The position numbers were made by a program, and so were the translations under genes. A model generated the notes under the pieces. That model worked only from the letters and a program-made list of their open reading frames with translations. It was not told the origin of the DNA and searched no databases. From Paragordius varius (taxonomy: Eukaryota > Animalia > Nematomorpha), in NCBI GenBank assembly GCA_964247055.1, contig OZ176052.1:3906001-3970000 (forward strand): a stretch of DNA of 64,000 nt. Reading direction: 5' to 3'. Below are positions 1 to 23,700 of the stretch, one piece after another. The number at the start of each line of letters is the position of its first letter. Position 1 is the first letter of the stretch.

Positions 1-60
1 AATATTTGTTGACCACCTAGTTTTTGAAATATTGAGAGAAAATATTTGGGCAAATAGATA
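1..60 (+). repeat. Fragment of the foldback family seen at 40060-41065
   Basis: tttgttgaccacctagtttttgaaatattgagagaaaa closely matches the reverse complement of ~40945-40990 (tttgttgacgatctagtttttgaaatattgagaaaaaa). Confidence 0.6.
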
Positions 61-582
61 GTTTTTAATTAATATTTTAATAGTTTACATAACTTATTGA
101 AAATATTCTGTTGAACAATTGCGACATTCATCCTTATCAACATGTGTGGTCACTTAATTTTTGGGCGAGACAAACGTTAATATACAATCATGACGCCGAA
201 ATTATAAATAGATTGCGATGTTAAAGGTACAAAATATGTATTAACGTTTTTTTATCATACATCAACGATGGTATTTTTTTAAAGTATACCTTAGCGCCGA
301 ATATAGCATATCTTTTATTAAAACACACTCAAATTTTTACTTTTTTTAGAATATTTCATTCCGTAATTTCTAATTTCGTATACGCAACCCATATATTTAT
401 TATTTCATGAACATTTATTGGATTATTTGAGAGATATTAATTTTAAAAATAAAAAAACTCATAAATTAACAAATTTTTTGCAAATTTTCAATATGGGTTG
501 GTAAAATTACAAAAGTATTAATTTTCACATATCAAAAGTTTTGAATTAGGGTTTGAATGGTTGCTTCTTGCATATCTTATCC

Positions 583-3500
583 TCAACCTAAATAAAATTT
601 ATATTGGTTAATAAAACAAATTATTCTAAGAGCTAATTTTTATTTATAAACTATACCTCTTGGTGGTGGTCCATCATCTCTACCGCCTCTCCCGCCACCT
701 CTACCACCATTTCTTCCATTATTGCCCCGCCCTAAAAATAGATACGATTTTTCAAAGTTAAGAGATATGGATCTGAATTTAATCTATGGTTTTAATTATG
801 CTTCTTTAAAATATTCTTGAATGTAAAATAGTTTGCATTAGATAGCTAAATGTATATTCTTGCGGATTTTTTTGTATAAAAAAGTAATAGATTCCAAAAT
901 TTTTATGTCATTGTTAATTTAATTATAAACAATTTGTCACCGCTGGTATCGAAAATTGTATATTTAAAACGATTCTTAAAAATTATAAATCAACTTCGAT
1001 TCTAATTTTTTTATTTAACTAAATCATAGGTTATGGAAGCGGTTTCTAAATATGTTTATAATGTAATTGATTGTGACTAAGCACTTTTAATCCGGTTCCA
1101 AAACCGGTTAAAATAGAGCATAGGATAACTTAAATATCGAAATATCAGAAATTCAAAGAATGCGATCGTTTTTACTTAAATAAATTTTATAAGAGTGACT
1201 ATTATTTATATTTACGATCATCCGTAAAAAGTTCAATTTATGATTATTAACATAAATTATAAACAAAATATGTCGTTGCTAAATAATGCTTTGATTGTTA
1301 CAAATTAGTTTTGATAACATTTGAATCTATGTAAGAAAAAATTCCAAAAGTTTGATATGATTAAAACATCATCCATAGCGCAATTTTTAATACGCCTAAA
1401 TGTAATAATTAACTATCTAATTTATATTGCTATGAAATTGTTGTCAGTTTTACAAAATAAGATGCCGACATAATTAGATTTTTTTGATACTTGTCGTTTC
1501 AAATTTTTATATAAATAAAAGATATATTTATTTATATAAGTATAATATCGATAAATTGCATTATTTTTCAGAAATTATTAATTATATTGATATTAGAGAC
1601 AGCCAATTTTTTCAAATTAAAATTAATTATACAAATATTAAATAATTTTAAAGTGATTTTTCTAAGAGACCATCTCTTTTATGGGGATTACGATATTGAT
1701 TTGCTTAGTTTATTCAGAATTTTTTCTTTAATAGATTTGTAAATTTCTTTATTATATTTTTGATCGAAATAGGCAATATAAATTATTGGCAAATTATTCT
1801 TAAATTTTTTATTTTTACTGATGTTTACATAAAAATATTTATATTATAATGAATATTTGGTAATATAAATTATTTTACCTGATCTTGGGTTTGGGTTTCC
1901 TCCTCCAATTCCTATTTTAAGAAACAATTATAAAATTATAAGTAAAATTTTTTTGCCCTAAATAAATTCTTATGAGTAATATATTTATCCTGCTTAATAT
2001 CTATTTATTATTCAGTGAAATTATATTAATTTTTTGTGAATTTTATCATTTTAGTAAAGACCTACGATTACTATCGGGCTATCTAGAATATAAAACGAGA
2101 TTCTATAATAATAGTCATTATTGATGTGGAGCCCTTATAAATTGTTAAATTTATTAACTCATGATGCCAATTTTTCAAGCACATAAGGGTCATAACAAAA
2201 AGTTTCGGTCAACATTATTAATTATAAAACAAATCTATTATATAAATTTTGGAGTATACCTCCTGGATCTCTGATTGGGCCCCCCAAAATCGGAACTCTA
2301 ATCGGACCCCCCAAAATTGAACTTCCCGGAATCGGGCCTCCAGGAATAGGACCTCCTATGCCTATAATTTAAAAATATTTCTATTATAAAGCAAATAATT
2401 ACAGTATACATTTTAATAGTTGCTTATTTCACATTATAGTAGGGCAATTGGAACACAGTAGTGTATGGATAGAAGAAAGGAAAAATATGTTTATTTAACA
2501 TTTAGTTTTTTTCATACACTACTGTGTTGCAAATTGGCCTACTATAGTGTGCTATAAGCAACCATTAAAATGCATACTGTAATTATGGACAATGTATTCA
2601 AAACTCTACTATTTTACAAACCAATAATAATATGAATAAGCCAGCATAAATGTGCATACTGTAATACTTCATTAGCAAAATTGAGATATTTTAGACGCTC
2701 TAAACTATTAATATCAAAGGCAATTAAATACCCGGAATCGGATTAGCTCCTGGAATTAAATTCGAGACTCCTCCAATCACACCTATATAGAGATAAAATT
2801 ATTAAAAAAATATATAGACTTGCTGTTTACCGGTTTAGTGTATTTTCAAAGAAGATTTTTTGGTAGATCAAAATTTAGAATATTTTTTGCTAAAAACGTT
2901 TTTTCGTACTAAAAATATTTGATACATTAGTGAAACTTTCATCTTATATCTATAAATTAAGCCTGTATGGTTAATTTGATAAAATAAATCAAGTGAGTAA
3001 TAATTAATTTTCATGATGTTTGGTTTTAAACTGTAAAAACTCTGCTGTAGTAGTAATTTGAAGCTATAGTTTTTATCAACAAAAATGTTAAATAATTATT
3101 AACTAAACCAAATATGAAATTAACTGTTCAAATTGGTTCTAATAGTGTCAAACATATCAAAAGCGTCAGAAATATATTAAAAATAGGTTTCGTAGCTATA
3201 TTTTATATATATTTTAATTCTATGTATGTTTTTTTTAAAGTTTTTGATTGCTATTTTTATGAGCGGTCACACTCCTGATACATTTATAATGGGTTTAGCC
3301 ATTTAAGTGTTATTTAAAGTATATACCAACTCATTGTGATAAGAAGTTTTTAATATGTAATATTAAGATATACCAGATATTTGGTTGGTTAATCCGGACA
3401 AATCTATAACACCATAAACAAATAAACAATTTATTATCTATAATTAACTAGTTTAATTCCTAATTGTCATATTTTATTAAATAGTTGGTATATAAAAATT

Positions 3501-5286
3501 TAAAGTCCCCATAATCTTATATCAAAGTTATCAAATAACTACATGAGTTATCGATTATGATTGCGCTAACTCCATATTAGCGAAATAATCGAAATCTAAA
3601 CAGCTGCTGATCACTATTACGGCTTAAACTTTCAATAATATGGCGCTAAGCATTTAAACAAGAAAATGAATAAGGTGAAACTAAAAGCTTCATTAATTTT
3701 TTGATTTCACACGCGTTATTAAAAAAAATTGGTAAGATAAAATTCAGACTATAAAACATTTGTATTCGATTTGCCCAATTTATTTAATTTAGTCCTGGTA
3801 TTGTAATAAGGGAAATATTAAATTTTATAAGGATAATTATATTAATTTTCAAATATGTTCTAATTTAATAGATTCTGTATTTCTTTTATAATATTTAAAA
3901 TTTAGAAAATTATTCACTTAATGTAGAGCCTGATTTTAGATAAACTAAAAAACATAAGGTATGTTTAAATCCCATATTACAAAATCGTTTTTTATATTTT
4001 TTAATATAATTTTGTCAGAATTTTTTTAGATTTTAGAAAGTCTGAATTTCAGAAGAGTTAAATGGAAGGTATTTTAATTGCTATTGATATATTACAGATA
4101 TATGGTAATGTGAATATATTTTAGTTTATAATATCTGATAATCAGCTGATTGCACAAACCATTAGTATCCCAATAGATATAAAAAGCCCCAAAAAATATA
4201 ATTTTCAAAAAATAAATAAAAATATGGTAAAATTTTGTAATAGTTACCCGGGATAAGATTGGAGCCTGGATATTTTATATAACATATATGATACAATAAA
4301 TAAAATTTAACAGAAAAAATATCAATCAACATTTTTCAAAGATAATACTAATAATTCAAAATTATTAGCATAAAACAATTAACAGTGTAAATATTTTTTC
4401 TTTTGACTGTTTGTAAACTGAGTATATCAATTCAAATAATAAAAATTTGGTAAAAATAATAATAATTATAACCCAGAGATAAGAGATTCCCGCCACTAGC
4501 ACCACCACCTAATATTAGTAAGATTATGTAAAATAATATTATTGCTAAAACATTGTTTGCATTTTTATAAATTTATTTACAAATACTCTTATTGAAAATT
4601 TTTTTAATATCGCTTTCTATCTTATCATATGACTGTGATGATCAAATTAAGATATAATAAATAAAAATTTTTACGCTTTTCGGAAAAAAATTATTAAAAA
4701 TTAAGATTTAGTCATGAATACGGTTCCTATTTACTGATATATCTTTAGCATATTAATACAAAATTTATAAACCTAAAAATCAATAATACTGATCAATGTG
4801 TTGGTGATTTTCAATTGACATTTAATAAACATTTAACAAAATGTCCATTTACTTATATTTACACTATTAATTTAACTTTTTATAAGCTAATGAAAAACAT
4901 TAACTTTTTTCATATTATAAATTTTTTTGCATTAAAAAATACTAAAATTAGATGCTAAAATTGGAAATAATACCACCAATATTGGGGATTCCTGCCAATG
5001 GATTGCTAATTCCGGAGCCCAAACCGCCCAATCCGCCCAGACCACCCAAGCCTCCAAGACCGCCTAGCCCACCTACTAAAAAAATTAAAATTTATTTTTT
5101 GCCTTTATAAAACATTGTTTATAAACCAAACTTATTCTTAACGGTAAATAGCTAAGAATTATCATTTAAATTATAGGGTAAGTAGTTTTAAATAATGATC
5201 ACAGATAAATAAAATTTACTTTGGCACATGGATAATCCTATCAGGATGGCACAAATCACTAAGTTATGGGTAATCTTAGAATACAT
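583..5286 (-). CDS. Secreted glycine/proline-rich low-complexity protein (~172 aa) encoded by micro-exons
   Basis: Exons in transcript order: 5286-5220 (MYSKITHNLVICAILIGLSMCQ, signal-peptide-like), 5075-4974 (GGL repeats), 4508-4473, 4265-4248, 3403-3374, 2782-2732, 2361-2260, 1911-1879, 731-657, 587-583 (GT TGA). All have AG/GT boundaries and phase-1 junctions and join into a 519-nt stop-free CDS. The 18-nt, 30-nt and terminal exons are the least certain. Confidence 0.8.
2402..2579. mobile_element. Tc1/mariner-type hairpin MITE (TA-CAGTA...TACTG-TA)
   Basis: ~70-bp imperfect inverted arms (2402-2469 and 2512-2579) with flanking TA, in an intron of the Gly-rich gene. Confidence 0.75.
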
Positions 5287-8200
5287 TTTTTTGCAAAGAA
5301 ATTTTTTAAAAATGAATTAAAAGTTTTTCTTTTATACTTTTTTTCACGACATTAAAATTATTTTTAAATCAAACTCATCAATAACAAATAATCGCTTTGC
5401 CGGAACACATTTCAAATGTCAGGTTCAACCGCAGTAATATATACATATATATTTATTCAAAGTTTTCTACAAAAAGTTATAAATAAAATGTCTGCTTTGA
5501 CATGCAAACCACGCTCTGAAATACTAAAGACTTTTATCTTTATTTGCATACATAATGACATTCAGATTTTGCCAAAAAATTGACAACGGTATCTAAAATA
5601 TGATGATATGATATCAATGGCATATGTATCATCTTTTTTAGTTACATGCAGCATTTTTGTTTTTTACCTGTGTCAAAATTGATGACATTTTTGACAAGAT
5701 AATATATTTGTTTTGACATCTAAACAAACTCCTGTCAAAACTTCTTGATTTAAATAAATATAAAATGATTAAAAATTTGACATATGTTTTTAGTTTAGAC
5801 CTAACAATCAAAACATAAGAGGTGATGCGAGTTTTTTTCCAAAGGGTAATCTTGGTGCATCTGACGCCGAATGCTTTTTTAGGATAAAAAGCTAATGGAA
5901 TAAAACTTTATCTGTTAGGTATAAGGCTTAAAATATTACAAAATAATAGCGAAAGTATAGAAATATAAAAGTTTAGGGGTGGGCCTTGGGATTAATTGGT
6001 TCAAAAATCATTATTAAAATTTTTAAATCGCCAATCTTAGCTTTTAAGATAGGTTAGCCTTATATTGTCACTTAGCTAGGTCATGAACATGGCCCTTTTA
6101 ATAAAAAAATCCCTGTAACCCAAAATTAGGAATAAGTTAATGCAGCTTCCTGCGCGTTAAAGTATAAGCGGCTTATTTATTAAGTTGTGTCTACTGGCAC
6201 AAAAGGGTACTCCATAATCAACTTTTTATCTTTAGTTAATAGTTAACAGCAATTAAAATGAACAGGATATTTGTTTTAGAGTAATCAATTTTTTATCTAA
6301 AAGTCTTAAATAAATACTTTTTTATGAACTGTAATTAATGGATGGCAATGACTACTTTTACCCCAAAGATGATACAACTGTATTTTTTAAATGGTTTGGA
6401 CTGCTAATTTCAAACTTGTACTGTCAATATTTATAATAGTTTTAAGCTTTTAAGATCAATTTAAAGTAAAGAATATTTGTATGATTGTTTTGATTCCATA
6501 GAACTACTCAAAATTTATTGCCAAGCCTGAGAATGATCCAAAGGTTCTCTTCTTGCATAATTACCTCTGAAAAAAGCCCTTCTGAAAAATTTTATTGGTG
6601 CAAAAGCTTATTGGATAAGACTTTGGTCTTAAATTGTATTTTACAAATTATAAAAAGATTCCTTAAATAAATAATATCATGGGAAATTTTTAACGGTAAT
6701 CTAAATTCGTATCATTTTGTTTTTTTGTTTGCAATCATTTTGGCTTTGAGTGAAGGCAAAACCTTACCCATTAGAAATCATTTATTGCTTATCAGTGAAA
6801 TTTTTCTAAAAATGCCGGGCTTTTAGGCCCAGGTACACCACCCATAAGATAAATTGATGCATGTTCTCATACAAATATAAAATTTTAATAGACATATTAA
6901 AAATCACTGTTCCGAACCCCAATTGGTACGGTTCCACCATTAGAAACAGTTTAATCAAATGCGTCCAGTTTTGCAAATTTTCGAATACATTATTTTTCCA
7001 TCAAATGGTTCAAATTGGGTTTCACTATTTAGAATCTAGAATGACCTATTATTTCGATACAATGAGGATTAGATGTCACAAAGAGTATATAAACTATTAA
7101 GCCAGTTTTTATGCTGATTATCCTAAAATCAAATCACATGATTCAAATAAAATAGCAGAAAAAAAATATAAAAATAAGTTAGGTAACCAAAAATTCAAAA
7201 AAATAGAAAGTAATTTAAAAATTTATTTTTTTCCGTTTAGAATCTCGGTTATATTTCCAAAAACGCTTGCGGAAACGTTTTAGATAATTATTTATTTGGT
7301 TCCAAAGTATCAAATACCTAAGTAAGCCTTATCATTTTTGTCTACATCTTACCTTACATTATAAGGCCACTTTAGAAAATAATAGTGATGACAACAGATC
7401 TATTTATCTTTGTTTATCTTGAGATCACAATTAAACATTACATATTATTTCAGTTAGATTTATTTTTTGTTAGCAGATTAATGTCGGTTGTAAATCTTAT
7501 TTTTTTGTTCAGATATCCTTATTGTATTACATAGCGCCCAAAATCGGTGGGTATAAAAAACTCGCGGGCTGCGTATTTACTACCCTTGCTTTACATCAAT
7601 CAAATCATAAAATATGATATATACATTCAGCGGCTTTAACCCTTTATCAAAAATCAGTGATGTTTTAAAGACTTAAGTATAATGGATATAAATATTCACA
7701 TAATATTTTAAAGCGGAAAAGGATGTTAAATAAGCATTTAATTAAGATTGTAATTGGATTTTTGCATATATTAAATAAATTAAAATCTTCACGGACTGAT
7801 CAAAATGTCGCGAAGAGCCGCATGCAGTTATTAATATTCGAAAATTTATCAACCTATACAAATAAATGTTATTAATAAAGGGTAAATTAAAATTAAATTA
7901 TTTATTTTTGCAGTAAAATAATAAGTTTTTTCATCTGAACGTCAATGTATATATCTGCTAAATCATTCGTGTAATAGGATAAATTACGCAAATATTGAAT
8001 ATTAGACAATTTGTCTAATACACCTTGAATCGTAATACTTGAGAATTATAGAATTCTCTATATTATACTGATTTGATCTAAATATCAAATTATTTTTAGT
8101 GAATAAATGGCTTAATGTTATAATTTTGTTTATAAATAAAATCTAATCATTGCAAAACAAACACATGATATTTTATTAAAACATATAAAATATCCAAAAT

Positions 8201-20746: not shown

Positions 20747-23700
20747 ATGCTTGAATTAAGAAAGGAAAGATCCCGCGATGCAGCACGAAGTCGAAGGGGA
20801 AAAGAAAATCATGAATTTAATCTTTTGGCCAAAATGTTACCGCTTCCAAGGGCCATAACTACCCAATTAGATAAAGCATCCATCATTCGTTTAACTACAG
20901 CTTACCTTAAAATACGGGAATTTTGTACATTCGGTTTCCCAGAATGGAATGGTAGAATTATTTCAGAGCAATCTATCCTCTCCAAAAATAACCACATACA
21001 ATCACCAACTAAATTGATTGCTTGGGGTAACGATTGTAAAATTTTGAAATATCCTACGATTAAACACCATACAACCAATAAAAATATTCCAGCAATGACA
21101 ACATATCTGAGTAAAAACAGCAATGAAAACATTTACCCATTTGCATCAACTAATAAGTGCGTGCCATCATCATTAGAACCTAATTTTGGTAATTTAGTTC
21201 CAATCATTAATATTTATAACAATTAAAGTATAAAGCAAAAACGTAAAAATATAAAGGACAAATATTTTTTGAAAAGACGTTTTACTTTTTTAAACCTTGA
21301 TTCTTTCAAATATAATCATCCTTTGGTTAATAGAAATAGTTAACAACTCGCTTATATATCTCATTGTAATTATAGTTTATGTATCAGGGTCTGGAAAAGT
21401 ATGGTTTTCTTTTTTAAATAATATATCAGTATTTTAATTAACATTAAATGCATGAGGTTGTGTTGCCAGTTAAATATTTTTTATCAAAAAATAGGTCCTG
21501 CCAATAAAGAGATGGAAATACTTATGGGCAACAACATTTTACAAGTAAAATTTCGCCAACATTAATTTCTTAAATATATCAAAAAAAATATGTATATAAA
21601 TTAATAAATTATGTACACCATCATTAGGCTTCTAAATATTTTTATTTAGTCCTTAGATGGCTTTGCATTTGCGCTATATAATGATGGCCGAATATTATAT
21701 GTGTCGGAAACTGTATCCATTTATCTCGGTTTATCACAGGTAAAAATCCCCACGATACGATTATATAAAATTATTTTTGAAGGGCGAATTATTATTTTTA
21801 GAGATTTACATTTTTGTATTAAAAAAACCCAAAGGTTGAATTGACTGGGAGTAGCATTTTTGATTACATACACCTCAAAGATCAAGGTGAATTCGCTAAA
21901 ATGCTAGGGATTGATCTGAAATGGATTTATTCGTCCAACGTTGAAACAACCTTTACAACAAATGCATCAGAACTCTCGAATAACTCCACCAAAAATGATC
22001 AACTATTTGATCTGAATCATTATAATAACCAGCGGATACCCAACACTTCATCAACGGTACAAATATACCCTGATATAGCTTTTAGCGAAACAGGTCTGCT
22101 AAGTTATTTATAACTCAATAAATATCTTAATTTAACATAAGACGGCTTTTTATATCAATATGTGTGCGTGTATATATAGTTGGAACTATGAAATGTCGCA
22201 AAAACAAATACAATAAAATCATTTGTATTCGAATGAAATCAACACTCAGTAAACGCGGGAATCATGTCAAGCAATCGGGATATCGAGTAAGTAATAAAAT
22301 AAAAAAGTATATTTAACCCTATTATACTATCGTAATTCTAACGTTTTCACCCCTAGGTGGTTCAATTGATATGTCGTTTTAGACCCAAAATCAACCAAGG
22401 TACATTAAATGTGTTATCATCAAAATATATTTTAAATACTAAACAATTAAATTTATAGATGATTTGATTGGAATGGTTGGGATTGCAATAGCTCCGCCAC
22501 CACCTGCCATTCATGAAATCAAAATTGAGAATGACATGTTTGTCATGCGACTTAATCTCGATTTCAGTATTATCAGTTGTGAAACAAAGTAAAACATATA
22601 TTGATTCAAAAGTTATATTATGTATTTTACAGTAGAGTATGGTAAAAGTTAAACGATTTTTCCCTATATTTTGTTTATTGAATTATGAACATATTTTTAA
22701 TACCATGCGCTACTGTATTTCATATAAGACTTAAAATTTTGGCGAGATTTTATTTTTGCATGGTAAAAATTTGGTTGATAAAAGAATCATATTAGAGGGG
22801 AGTTTTCTCTAATTATAAAAGTTTTTTTAATACATCATCCCAAATAATGATTTACATAGGGAATCTTCAATTTCCAATAAAATTTAAACTTTTACCAAAA
22901 TATGTATTTTATAATTGTAAGGCGGCTTTGACGACACATATATCTACATAGGTTTTCTAGATTAATATATGATCAAAATTACCATAATTATTTGAAATAT
23001 AAATAGTGATAGAGCCTAAATGTTTACTGTTATCTATAATAATAGAATGTTAATTTTCCAAAAAAAAGCGTGGACCATTCAATTCGATAAGATTGTTCAT
23101 TTTTTTAATAATGCATTGAACATTGTAGGATATTTTTTCAAATAAACCACTGCCACCGCTTTCAGGTCATATGACACCCTTTGCGAAAAAAACCCCAAAA
23201 TACTTAAAAGCAATATCCGTTCATGTTTAAAGATTAAAATAAGTCAATAGTAGTTTTTAGTATTCTCTATGTAGCACTGTGAAAAAGGCCCACCATATAA
23301 AAACACCATGGTCTTGAAGCTAACTTTCACACAAGTGACAATATATTCAATAAGGGTTTTAATTTTTTCCATTATAAAATCGCAAATTCTACCCCTTTAA
23401 ATAGTCGCTGGGTAGGGGTTACCGTCTGTAAAATGCGCCATCCTATACCTTTAAATCTAATTTTGTCCAAGTTAAAATATGGGATTCAATTATGGTTTTA
23501 GGTAATTTTTGTATAAATGCAAAAAATTTTAGTTTAGGTTTATAATTAATCCCTGAATAGGGCTTTATCATCTGTAAAGACCACATTATAGATATTATAT
23601 GGCTTAGAAGCGAGTTTTTGGATAAACGAGCATAGCAAGTTAATAATACTAATTACGTTATATTATTTTAATCTTTCAAGCGGCCATGTCCGTAAACTTT

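Follow-up and report, generated by a model that had tools for sequence, protein, structure and literature searches.

Micro-exon genes (MEGs) are defined by having most of their coding region in very small symmetric exons (PMC4350168), which are mostly ∼15 nt in length and range from 6 to 81 nt (bioRxiv 10.1101/2023.06.21.545858). They contain 10–20 exons, occur as families with demonstrated alternative splicing and gland expression, and have been reported as restricted to the platyhelminths (PMC4350168; bioRxiv 10.1101/2023.06.21.545858). Another parasite-like lineage, the aphids, is already known to have the same-phase micro-exon architecture, and there the KQY/KHI cassette effectors and the bicycle genes are secreted-protein genes of this kind outside the flatworms, with 10–37 or more exons, often of ≤15 nt, distributed over 12–87 kb, and with families that share a conserved signal-peptide region; the bicycle proteins carry CYC motifs (PMC7495047, PMC9168663). 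In every species, tropoelastin has only phase 1:1 junctions, a layout that allows splicing in the manner of cassettes (bioRxiv 10.1101/2024.12.03.626628), and glycine-rich proteins (GRPs; ≥20% Gly) commonly act as glues, cements, coats and antimicrobials (PMC11772090). Here, we describe a gene in a 64-kb stretch of the 110.6-Mb genome assembly of Paragordius varius (contig C3, positions 3906001–3970000; this whole stretch is referred to as the window, and coordinates are given within it), in which an earlier note, made from the letters of the DNA, had recognized a MEG-like locus. This is very probably an intact, single-copy, lineage-specific gene, which runs on the minus strand from 5286 to 583 with a span of ∼4.7 kb. 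It is a member of neither the MEGs, the aphid effectors nor elastin, and its compositional class is that of the GRPs.

The model of the gene has nine exons with canonical AG/GT borders, set in AT-rich animal DNA with ∼26% GC throughout the window. The 67-nt signal exon (5286→5220) is followed, in order, by exons of 102, 36, 18, 30, 51, 102, 33 and 75 nt. All eight of these downstream exons have lengths that are multiples of three and are symmetric (phase 1–1), with the first two bases of each exon completing a codon and the last base beginning the following one. Six junctions fall in a Gly codon and that between exons 4 and 5 falls in an Asp codon; at the junction between exons 1 and 2 the codon is Ile or Ser, as set by which AG of a tandem tag/tag acceptor is used. 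The frame is open from the ATG through to the stop with phase-1 continuity kept, and the coding frame of the locus is intact, spliceable, maintained by selection and headed by a secretion signal. The view put forward in the earlier note, that a secreted-protein gene lies here hidden from the open reading frame (ORF) track, is borne out by the intact frame and the signal exon. Its exon map was likewise reproduced in its positions, lengths, borders and phase for all nine exons; of these, the 30-nt exon does not rise above chance.

Like the MEGs, the gene places short symmetric exons, parted by much longer introns, behind a signal exon, is overlooked by automatic ORF/gene finders and would keep its frame on exon skipping; it differs from them in having eight to nine exons, with close to half of its coding sequence (40%) in two exons of 102 nt, and in being single-copy with no detected sequence relative. 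It shares with the aphid cassette and bicycle genes the making of a secreted protein from many small exons of one common phase, and departs from them in the lack of a family, in its smaller set of eight to nine exons, in the absence of Cys from the mature protein and in its length of 4.7 kb. The closest analogue in design is tropoelastin, with a resemblance that is not by descent. Every junction is phase 1:1, as in tropoelastin, the modules are hydrophobic, Gly/Pro-rich and of low complexity (hPG, GGh and hGG in tropoelastin; GGL and GGPIPG here), and the secreted, disordered and self-associating character of tropoelastin is likely to be shared by this protein. Unlike tropoelastin, the gene lacks alternating cross-linking exons rich in Lys (no KA/KP exons) as well as a C-terminal Cys pair, and its product has ∼150 rather than ∼700 residues with no sequence homology to elastin, which is a vertebrate family. 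The gene resembles the GRPs, for example the tick cement GRPs (PMC11772090), in its signal peptide, its ∼35% Gly, its short repeats and its lineage-specific sequence; the GRPs are a compositional class and not a homologous family, so that membership says little on mechanism.

The coding nature of the exons is supported by base composition, by repeat divergence and by exon lengths. A blind scan of 24-nt windows with ≥50% GC recovers exons 2, 3, 4, 6, 7, 8 and 9, and at the same threshold it finds only two small islands outside the model across 4.1 kb of intron. The GC content of these seven supported downstream exons is 0.47–0.58, compared with 0.16–0.26 in the introns. Read in the proposed frame, the GC contents at the first, second and third codon positions (GC1/GC2/GC3) are 0.59/0.64/0.35, a pattern that is a coding signature for an AT-rich genome. 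The six GGL units of exon 2 show 41 pairwise nucleotide differences and no amino-acid change, and the two copies of SNLIP(+G) in exons 4 and 6, a repetition to which the earlier note had drawn attention, differ at five of 15 nucleotides, all five differences being synonymous. Such synonymous-only divergence among the repeats indicates that the peptide is under purifying selection. Were the lengths set by the maximal AG/GT borders of the seven independent islands random, the probability that all of them would be multiples of three is ∼(1/3)^7. Apart from those of 18 and 30 nt, the exons of the model, seven in number, are solid. That of 18 nt is probably real: no other intronic AG..GT candidate of ≥18 nt has a GC content of ≥0.5, and by composition it ranks first among the intronic candidates.

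The odds that the 30-nt exon (proposed exon 5; 3374–3403, minus strand) is real are near even, if slightly unfavourable. Its GC content is 37% (0.37) and it lacks the codon-position signature. The 1465 nt that separate exons 4 and 6 contain 14 AG..GT segments that are phase 1, in frame and stop-free, this exon among them, and by amino-acid composition it ranks ninth of 38 intronic candidates; it is also the sole exon to begin with A and the sole one with an Asp junction codon. In its favour, the acceptor (tatag) and the donor (gtatat) are similar to those of the exons held with confidence. The frame is kept whether this exon is included or omitted.

Exon 1 (5220–5286, minus strand, as are all exons) contains the ATG, a 22-codon signal peptide and one further base, which opens the codon completed in exon 2, and ends at a gtaaat donor. 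Its 22 residues have a basic start, a 12-residue hydrophobic core with a nine-residue Kyte–Doolittle mean of up to 3.24, and small residues near the end, and the predicted signal peptide reaches the exon 1 donor. The ATG is preceded by an A-rich context and, 50 nt upstream on the same strand, by a candidate TATA box, TATAAAAG (5329–5336), as a putative promoter. With both strands of the 64-kb window counted, there are 22 occurrences of this 8-mer, or 0.17 per kb per strand, so that its correct placement may be regarded as mildly significant. Exon 2 (4974–5075; GC 0.58) encodes (GGL)6 followed by a Ser/Asn/Pro/Ile-rich tail. The tandem acceptor noted above (NAGNAG-type) lies at 5073–5078 and two GT donors 3 nt apart lie at 4974–4979, which gives alternative lengths of 96, 99 or 102 nt, all in frame; these borders are the only hint at the sequence level of small-scale alternative splicing.

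Exon 3 (4473–4508; 36 nt) is a Gly/Ser/Leu module and forms an island of GC 0.56 within an intron of 18% GC; its unusual GTT donor is, as read from the sequence, the sole GT ahead of the next in-frame stop. Exon 4 (4248–4265; 18 nt; GC 0.56) is the SNLIP micro-exon and exon 6 (2732–2782; 51 nt; GC 0.47) is a Val/Ile/Gly/Asn/Pro module that contains SNLIPG. Exon 7 (2260–2361; 102 nt; GC 0.55) consists of GGPIP/GGPIR repeats and exon 8 (1879–1911; 33 nt; GC 0.48) of a Gly/Asn/Pro module. Exon 9 (640–731; GC 0.57) encodes an RGG/RG-rich block and allows two 3′ ends. Either a 75-nt exon (657–731) is spliced across a 69-nt intron (588–656) to an alternative terminal coding end of GT plus TGA (587–583), for which the AATAAA signals at 419 and 401 would serve for polyadenylation, or the exon is read through for four more codons to a TAA at 642–640 that overlaps an AATAAA at 644–639.

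The full protein has ∼175 amino acids, of which roughly 150–154 remain after predicted signal cleavage. From the exon-by-exon translations, the mature composition is ∼35% Gly (∼54 Gly), 12% Pro and 24% Ile/Leu/Val, well above the ≥20% Gly by which GRPs are delimited (PMC11772090). The nine Arg are concentrated in the C-terminal RGG/RG block and are accompanied by three to four Asp. Cys, Phe, Trp, Glu, His and Met are absent from the mature protein, and Tyr and Lys each occur once at most, Lys only as the last residue of the read-through variant. Such a chain is unable to fold compactly, and its composition is that of glycine-rich structural proteins. The repeat modules are six copies of GGL, the GGPIP/GGPIR units and two copies of SNLIPG; Tandem Repeats Finder (TRF) detects an 18-nt period in exon 2 and a 27-nt period with two copies in exon 7. 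These short repeated modules indicate growth by internal duplication.

We favour, and consider rather probable, the view that the gene as a whole encodes an orphan secreted, disordered and self-associating protein of a matrix, coat or adhesive type, the phase-1 layout of which is a by-product. On the strength of its composition, the product would be a secreted glycine-rich, elastomer-like matrix, coat or adhesive protein, with the cuticle, an egg covering or a surface coat as possible sites. The high Pro and Gly content of elastomeric proteins maintains hydration and disorder (PMC5703643); here, it would keep a hydrophobic chain hydrated and disordered and would favour liquid-like self-association. 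With regard to the layout, a phase-1 intron in an AG/G proto-splice site splits a GGN Gly codon (Patthy; PMC8001218), and phase-1 introns are found in significant excess near signal-peptide cleavage sites (PMC8001218), in agreement with the caveat in the earlier note that Gly-rich proteins favour phase-1 junctions. Introns between bases 1 and 2 of GGN codons and right after the signal peptide would therefore be the default placement, and internal duplication of the GGL, GGPI and SNLIP units may then have multiplied like-phased pieces. A glycine-rich secreted protein with AG/G proto-splice sites would thus drift towards 1–1 exons, and the simplest view of its all-phase-1 architecture is that of a by-product.

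Several points weigh against this view. The expression of the gene, its precise set of exons and its function are predictions. A run of eight phase-1 introns is unusual even in a Gly-rich gene; eight of eight in phase 1 somewhat exceeds what the Gly and signal-peptide biases alone predict, and selection for frame-neutral exons is possible. Finally, the residues used for cross-linking (Lys-Ala, Tyr, Cys), by which a matrix could be stabilized, are lacking, a weakness of this view.

The gene is a single-copy orphan. A DNA search of its own genome with the whole locus returned only the locus itself and a miniature inverted-repeat transposable element (MITE) in one of its introns, and peptide searches of the genome with exons 1, 2, 7 and 9 gave self matches only. 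The paralogues with the same signal exon for which a genome search had been proposed were thus not found in the 110.6 Mb. Homologue searches were run on single exons rather than on the joined product. No Pfam family was matched by the longest four of the exon peptides, a phmmer search of 1.84 billion representative proteins with exon 7 returned no relative (the single match is to an unrelated repeat protein), and no ESM Atlas neighbour of exon 7 stood above noise (best score 0.75). Further Gly/Pro cassettes were found neither in the 15 kb downstream nor in the rest of the window.

The degenerate patterns (GGL)3 and GPIPGGPI retrieved, in the same genome, the gene itself and two other (GGL)n loci. 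The first of these, on contig C4 (∼2698402–2699732, plus strand), has a signal peptide and a ∼1.07-kb exon of GGLG/QQGAALGALGGLG repeats, followed by a single phase-1 intron and a last exon that is rich in GFPG/GGPG and carries a basic tail; with its exons of ordinary size, it has the appearance of a gene for a secreted protein of the silk- or elastin-like kind. BLASTP against it gave no significant similarity to the present gene. The second, on contig C6 (∼2914545–2915954, minus strand), is a three-exon gene that encodes a signal peptide, a poly-Pro/Lys stretch and, after these, a (GGL/GGI)n block as well as Gly-rich blocks in which Tyr, Phe and Ile occur. Both were rejected as cassette relatives, being ordinary genes of two to three exons. 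As their (GGL)n blocks lie in ordinary large exons, the motif class is not tied to micro-exons, and glycine-rich secreted proteins are a recurring class in this animal.

The intron between exons 6 and 7 contains the palindromic MITE-like element (∼190 bp, 2395–2586), which has 55-nt arms that are 89% complementary and occurs in at least 40 copies with 74–87% identity; these are spread over many contigs, and every one of them matches in either orientation. A perfect 12-nt palindrome with ATCAGCTGAT, an instance of the word AWCAGCTGWT, (4140–4151) lies in the intron between exons 4 and 5, within a 40-nt open AG..GT segment of the plus strand; the motif WCAGCTGW occurs three times in the window against 0.84 expected. 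Two GC-rich islands outside the exon model, 3258–3284 and 3600–3624, lie in the long intron. No second copy of the intronic stretch 3200–4200 was found in the genome, and there was no Rfam match in window positions 1–8000.

An alternative to a functional gene is that the locus is unexpressed or decaying, or that the model is wrong, with the GC islands being gene remnants or parts of another exon chain. We regard this as improbable. It would accommodate the two intronic islands that remain outside the model, the chance-level standing of the 30-nt exon, the ambiguity of the 3′ end and the lack of homologue evidence for the locus. It is, however, at odds with eight consecutive open exons in phase with intact splice sites, with a model complete from its start and signal peptide to its stop and poly(A) signal, and with the purifying selection that the synonymous-only divergence of the repeats indicates. 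Nor was a plus-strand alternative found: a gene on that strand was considered and rejected, as the plus strand offers neither a consistent open AG..GT chain nor a Gly-rich reading.

Quite improbable, in our estimation, is a MEG-like variation system in which the phase-1 cassettes are skipped combinatorially to produce variant secreted proteins at a parasite–host interface, in the way of the schistosome MEGs and the aphid cassette effectors. The layout of a signal exon followed exclusively by symmetric phase-1 exons agrees with such a system, and the earlier note was correct that any subset of the internal cassettes can be removed in frame: all junctions are phase 1, the last base of any exon (G; A for exon 1) never forms a stop codon with the first two bases of any later exon, and no frameshift arises. 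All skipping products are thus in frame and stop-free, and Gly is kept at most junctions. Exons 2 and 3 could be prone to alternative use, the former through its tandem acceptor and the latter through its weak GTT donor, and the source animal is probably a parasitoid hairworm. In-frame skipping is therefore possible by layout, although its actual use is not indicated. Of the features that define MEGs, the gene has the signal-peptide exon and the symmetric internal exons, but its coding region does not lie mostly in very small exons and it has neither a sequence family nor paralogues, so that the claim of a MEG-like system made at the outset is not supported. Four of the eight downstream exons are ≤36 nt in length, of which three are supported, and together these four hold only ∼23% of the coding sequence (117 of ∼514 nt), or ∼18% without the 30-nt exon; the signal exon is not shared with other loci. 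The composition is, moreover, of a low-complexity, structural kind, and the phase pattern can be accounted for in ordinary terms (PMC8001218).

A glycine-rich cationic defence peptide or precursor of the antimicrobial type, similar to other Gly-rich immune effectors of invertebrates, is very unlikely: its signal peptide, high Gly content, small size and net positive charge (nine Arg versus three to four Asp) would suit a recognized role of glycine-rich proteins, antimicrobial activity (PMC11772090), but the protein has no dibasic processing sites and no aromatic residues, its hydrophobic GGL and GGPIP blocks are closer to those of elastomeric proteins, and no homologue was found with Pfam or in the phmmer search with exon 7. 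Gly/Tyr-rich or Gly/His-rich peptides differ from this protein in the matter of aromatic residues.

Other observations were made in the same window and genome. An ORF at 20747–21226 (plus strand) has an N-terminus that reads, by eye only, like the basic helix–loop–helix (bHLH) start of a bHLH-PAS factor of the Sim/Trachealess/NPAS type. The mitochondrial contig C44 (5980–10320) contains zero-loop palindromes, the arms of which measure 131 nt (95%) and 97 nt (99%), as well as a tandem array of 49–52-nt hairpins at a spacing of 72 nt, which adjoins COX1; the COX1 of this contig has six in-frame TGA codons. Hairpin-rich mitochondrial DNA has been reported as a hallmark of the Nematomorpha (PMC6649704, PMC10380579), and the C44 palindromes and hairpins resemble it, which makes an assignment of the genome to the horsehair worms plausible.

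A more far-reaching proposal is that the gene belongs to a hairworm-specific set of unrelated secreted-protein genes, each built from same-phase cassettes, whose exons are skipped in a stage- or host-dependent manner. We hold this to be very doubtful; if true, the variation of secreted proteins by means of micro-exons, in an animal that lives inside another organism, would have a third independent origin in addition to those in the blood flukes and the aphids. On the view favoured here, that of a secreted Gly/Pro-rich matrix-type protein, the gene is ordinary on its own, and what is new is an unannotated orphan gene for a poorly studied phylum. The case illustrates how glycine-rich secreted proteins become strings of frame-neutral exons that are overlooked by ORF-based gene finders.

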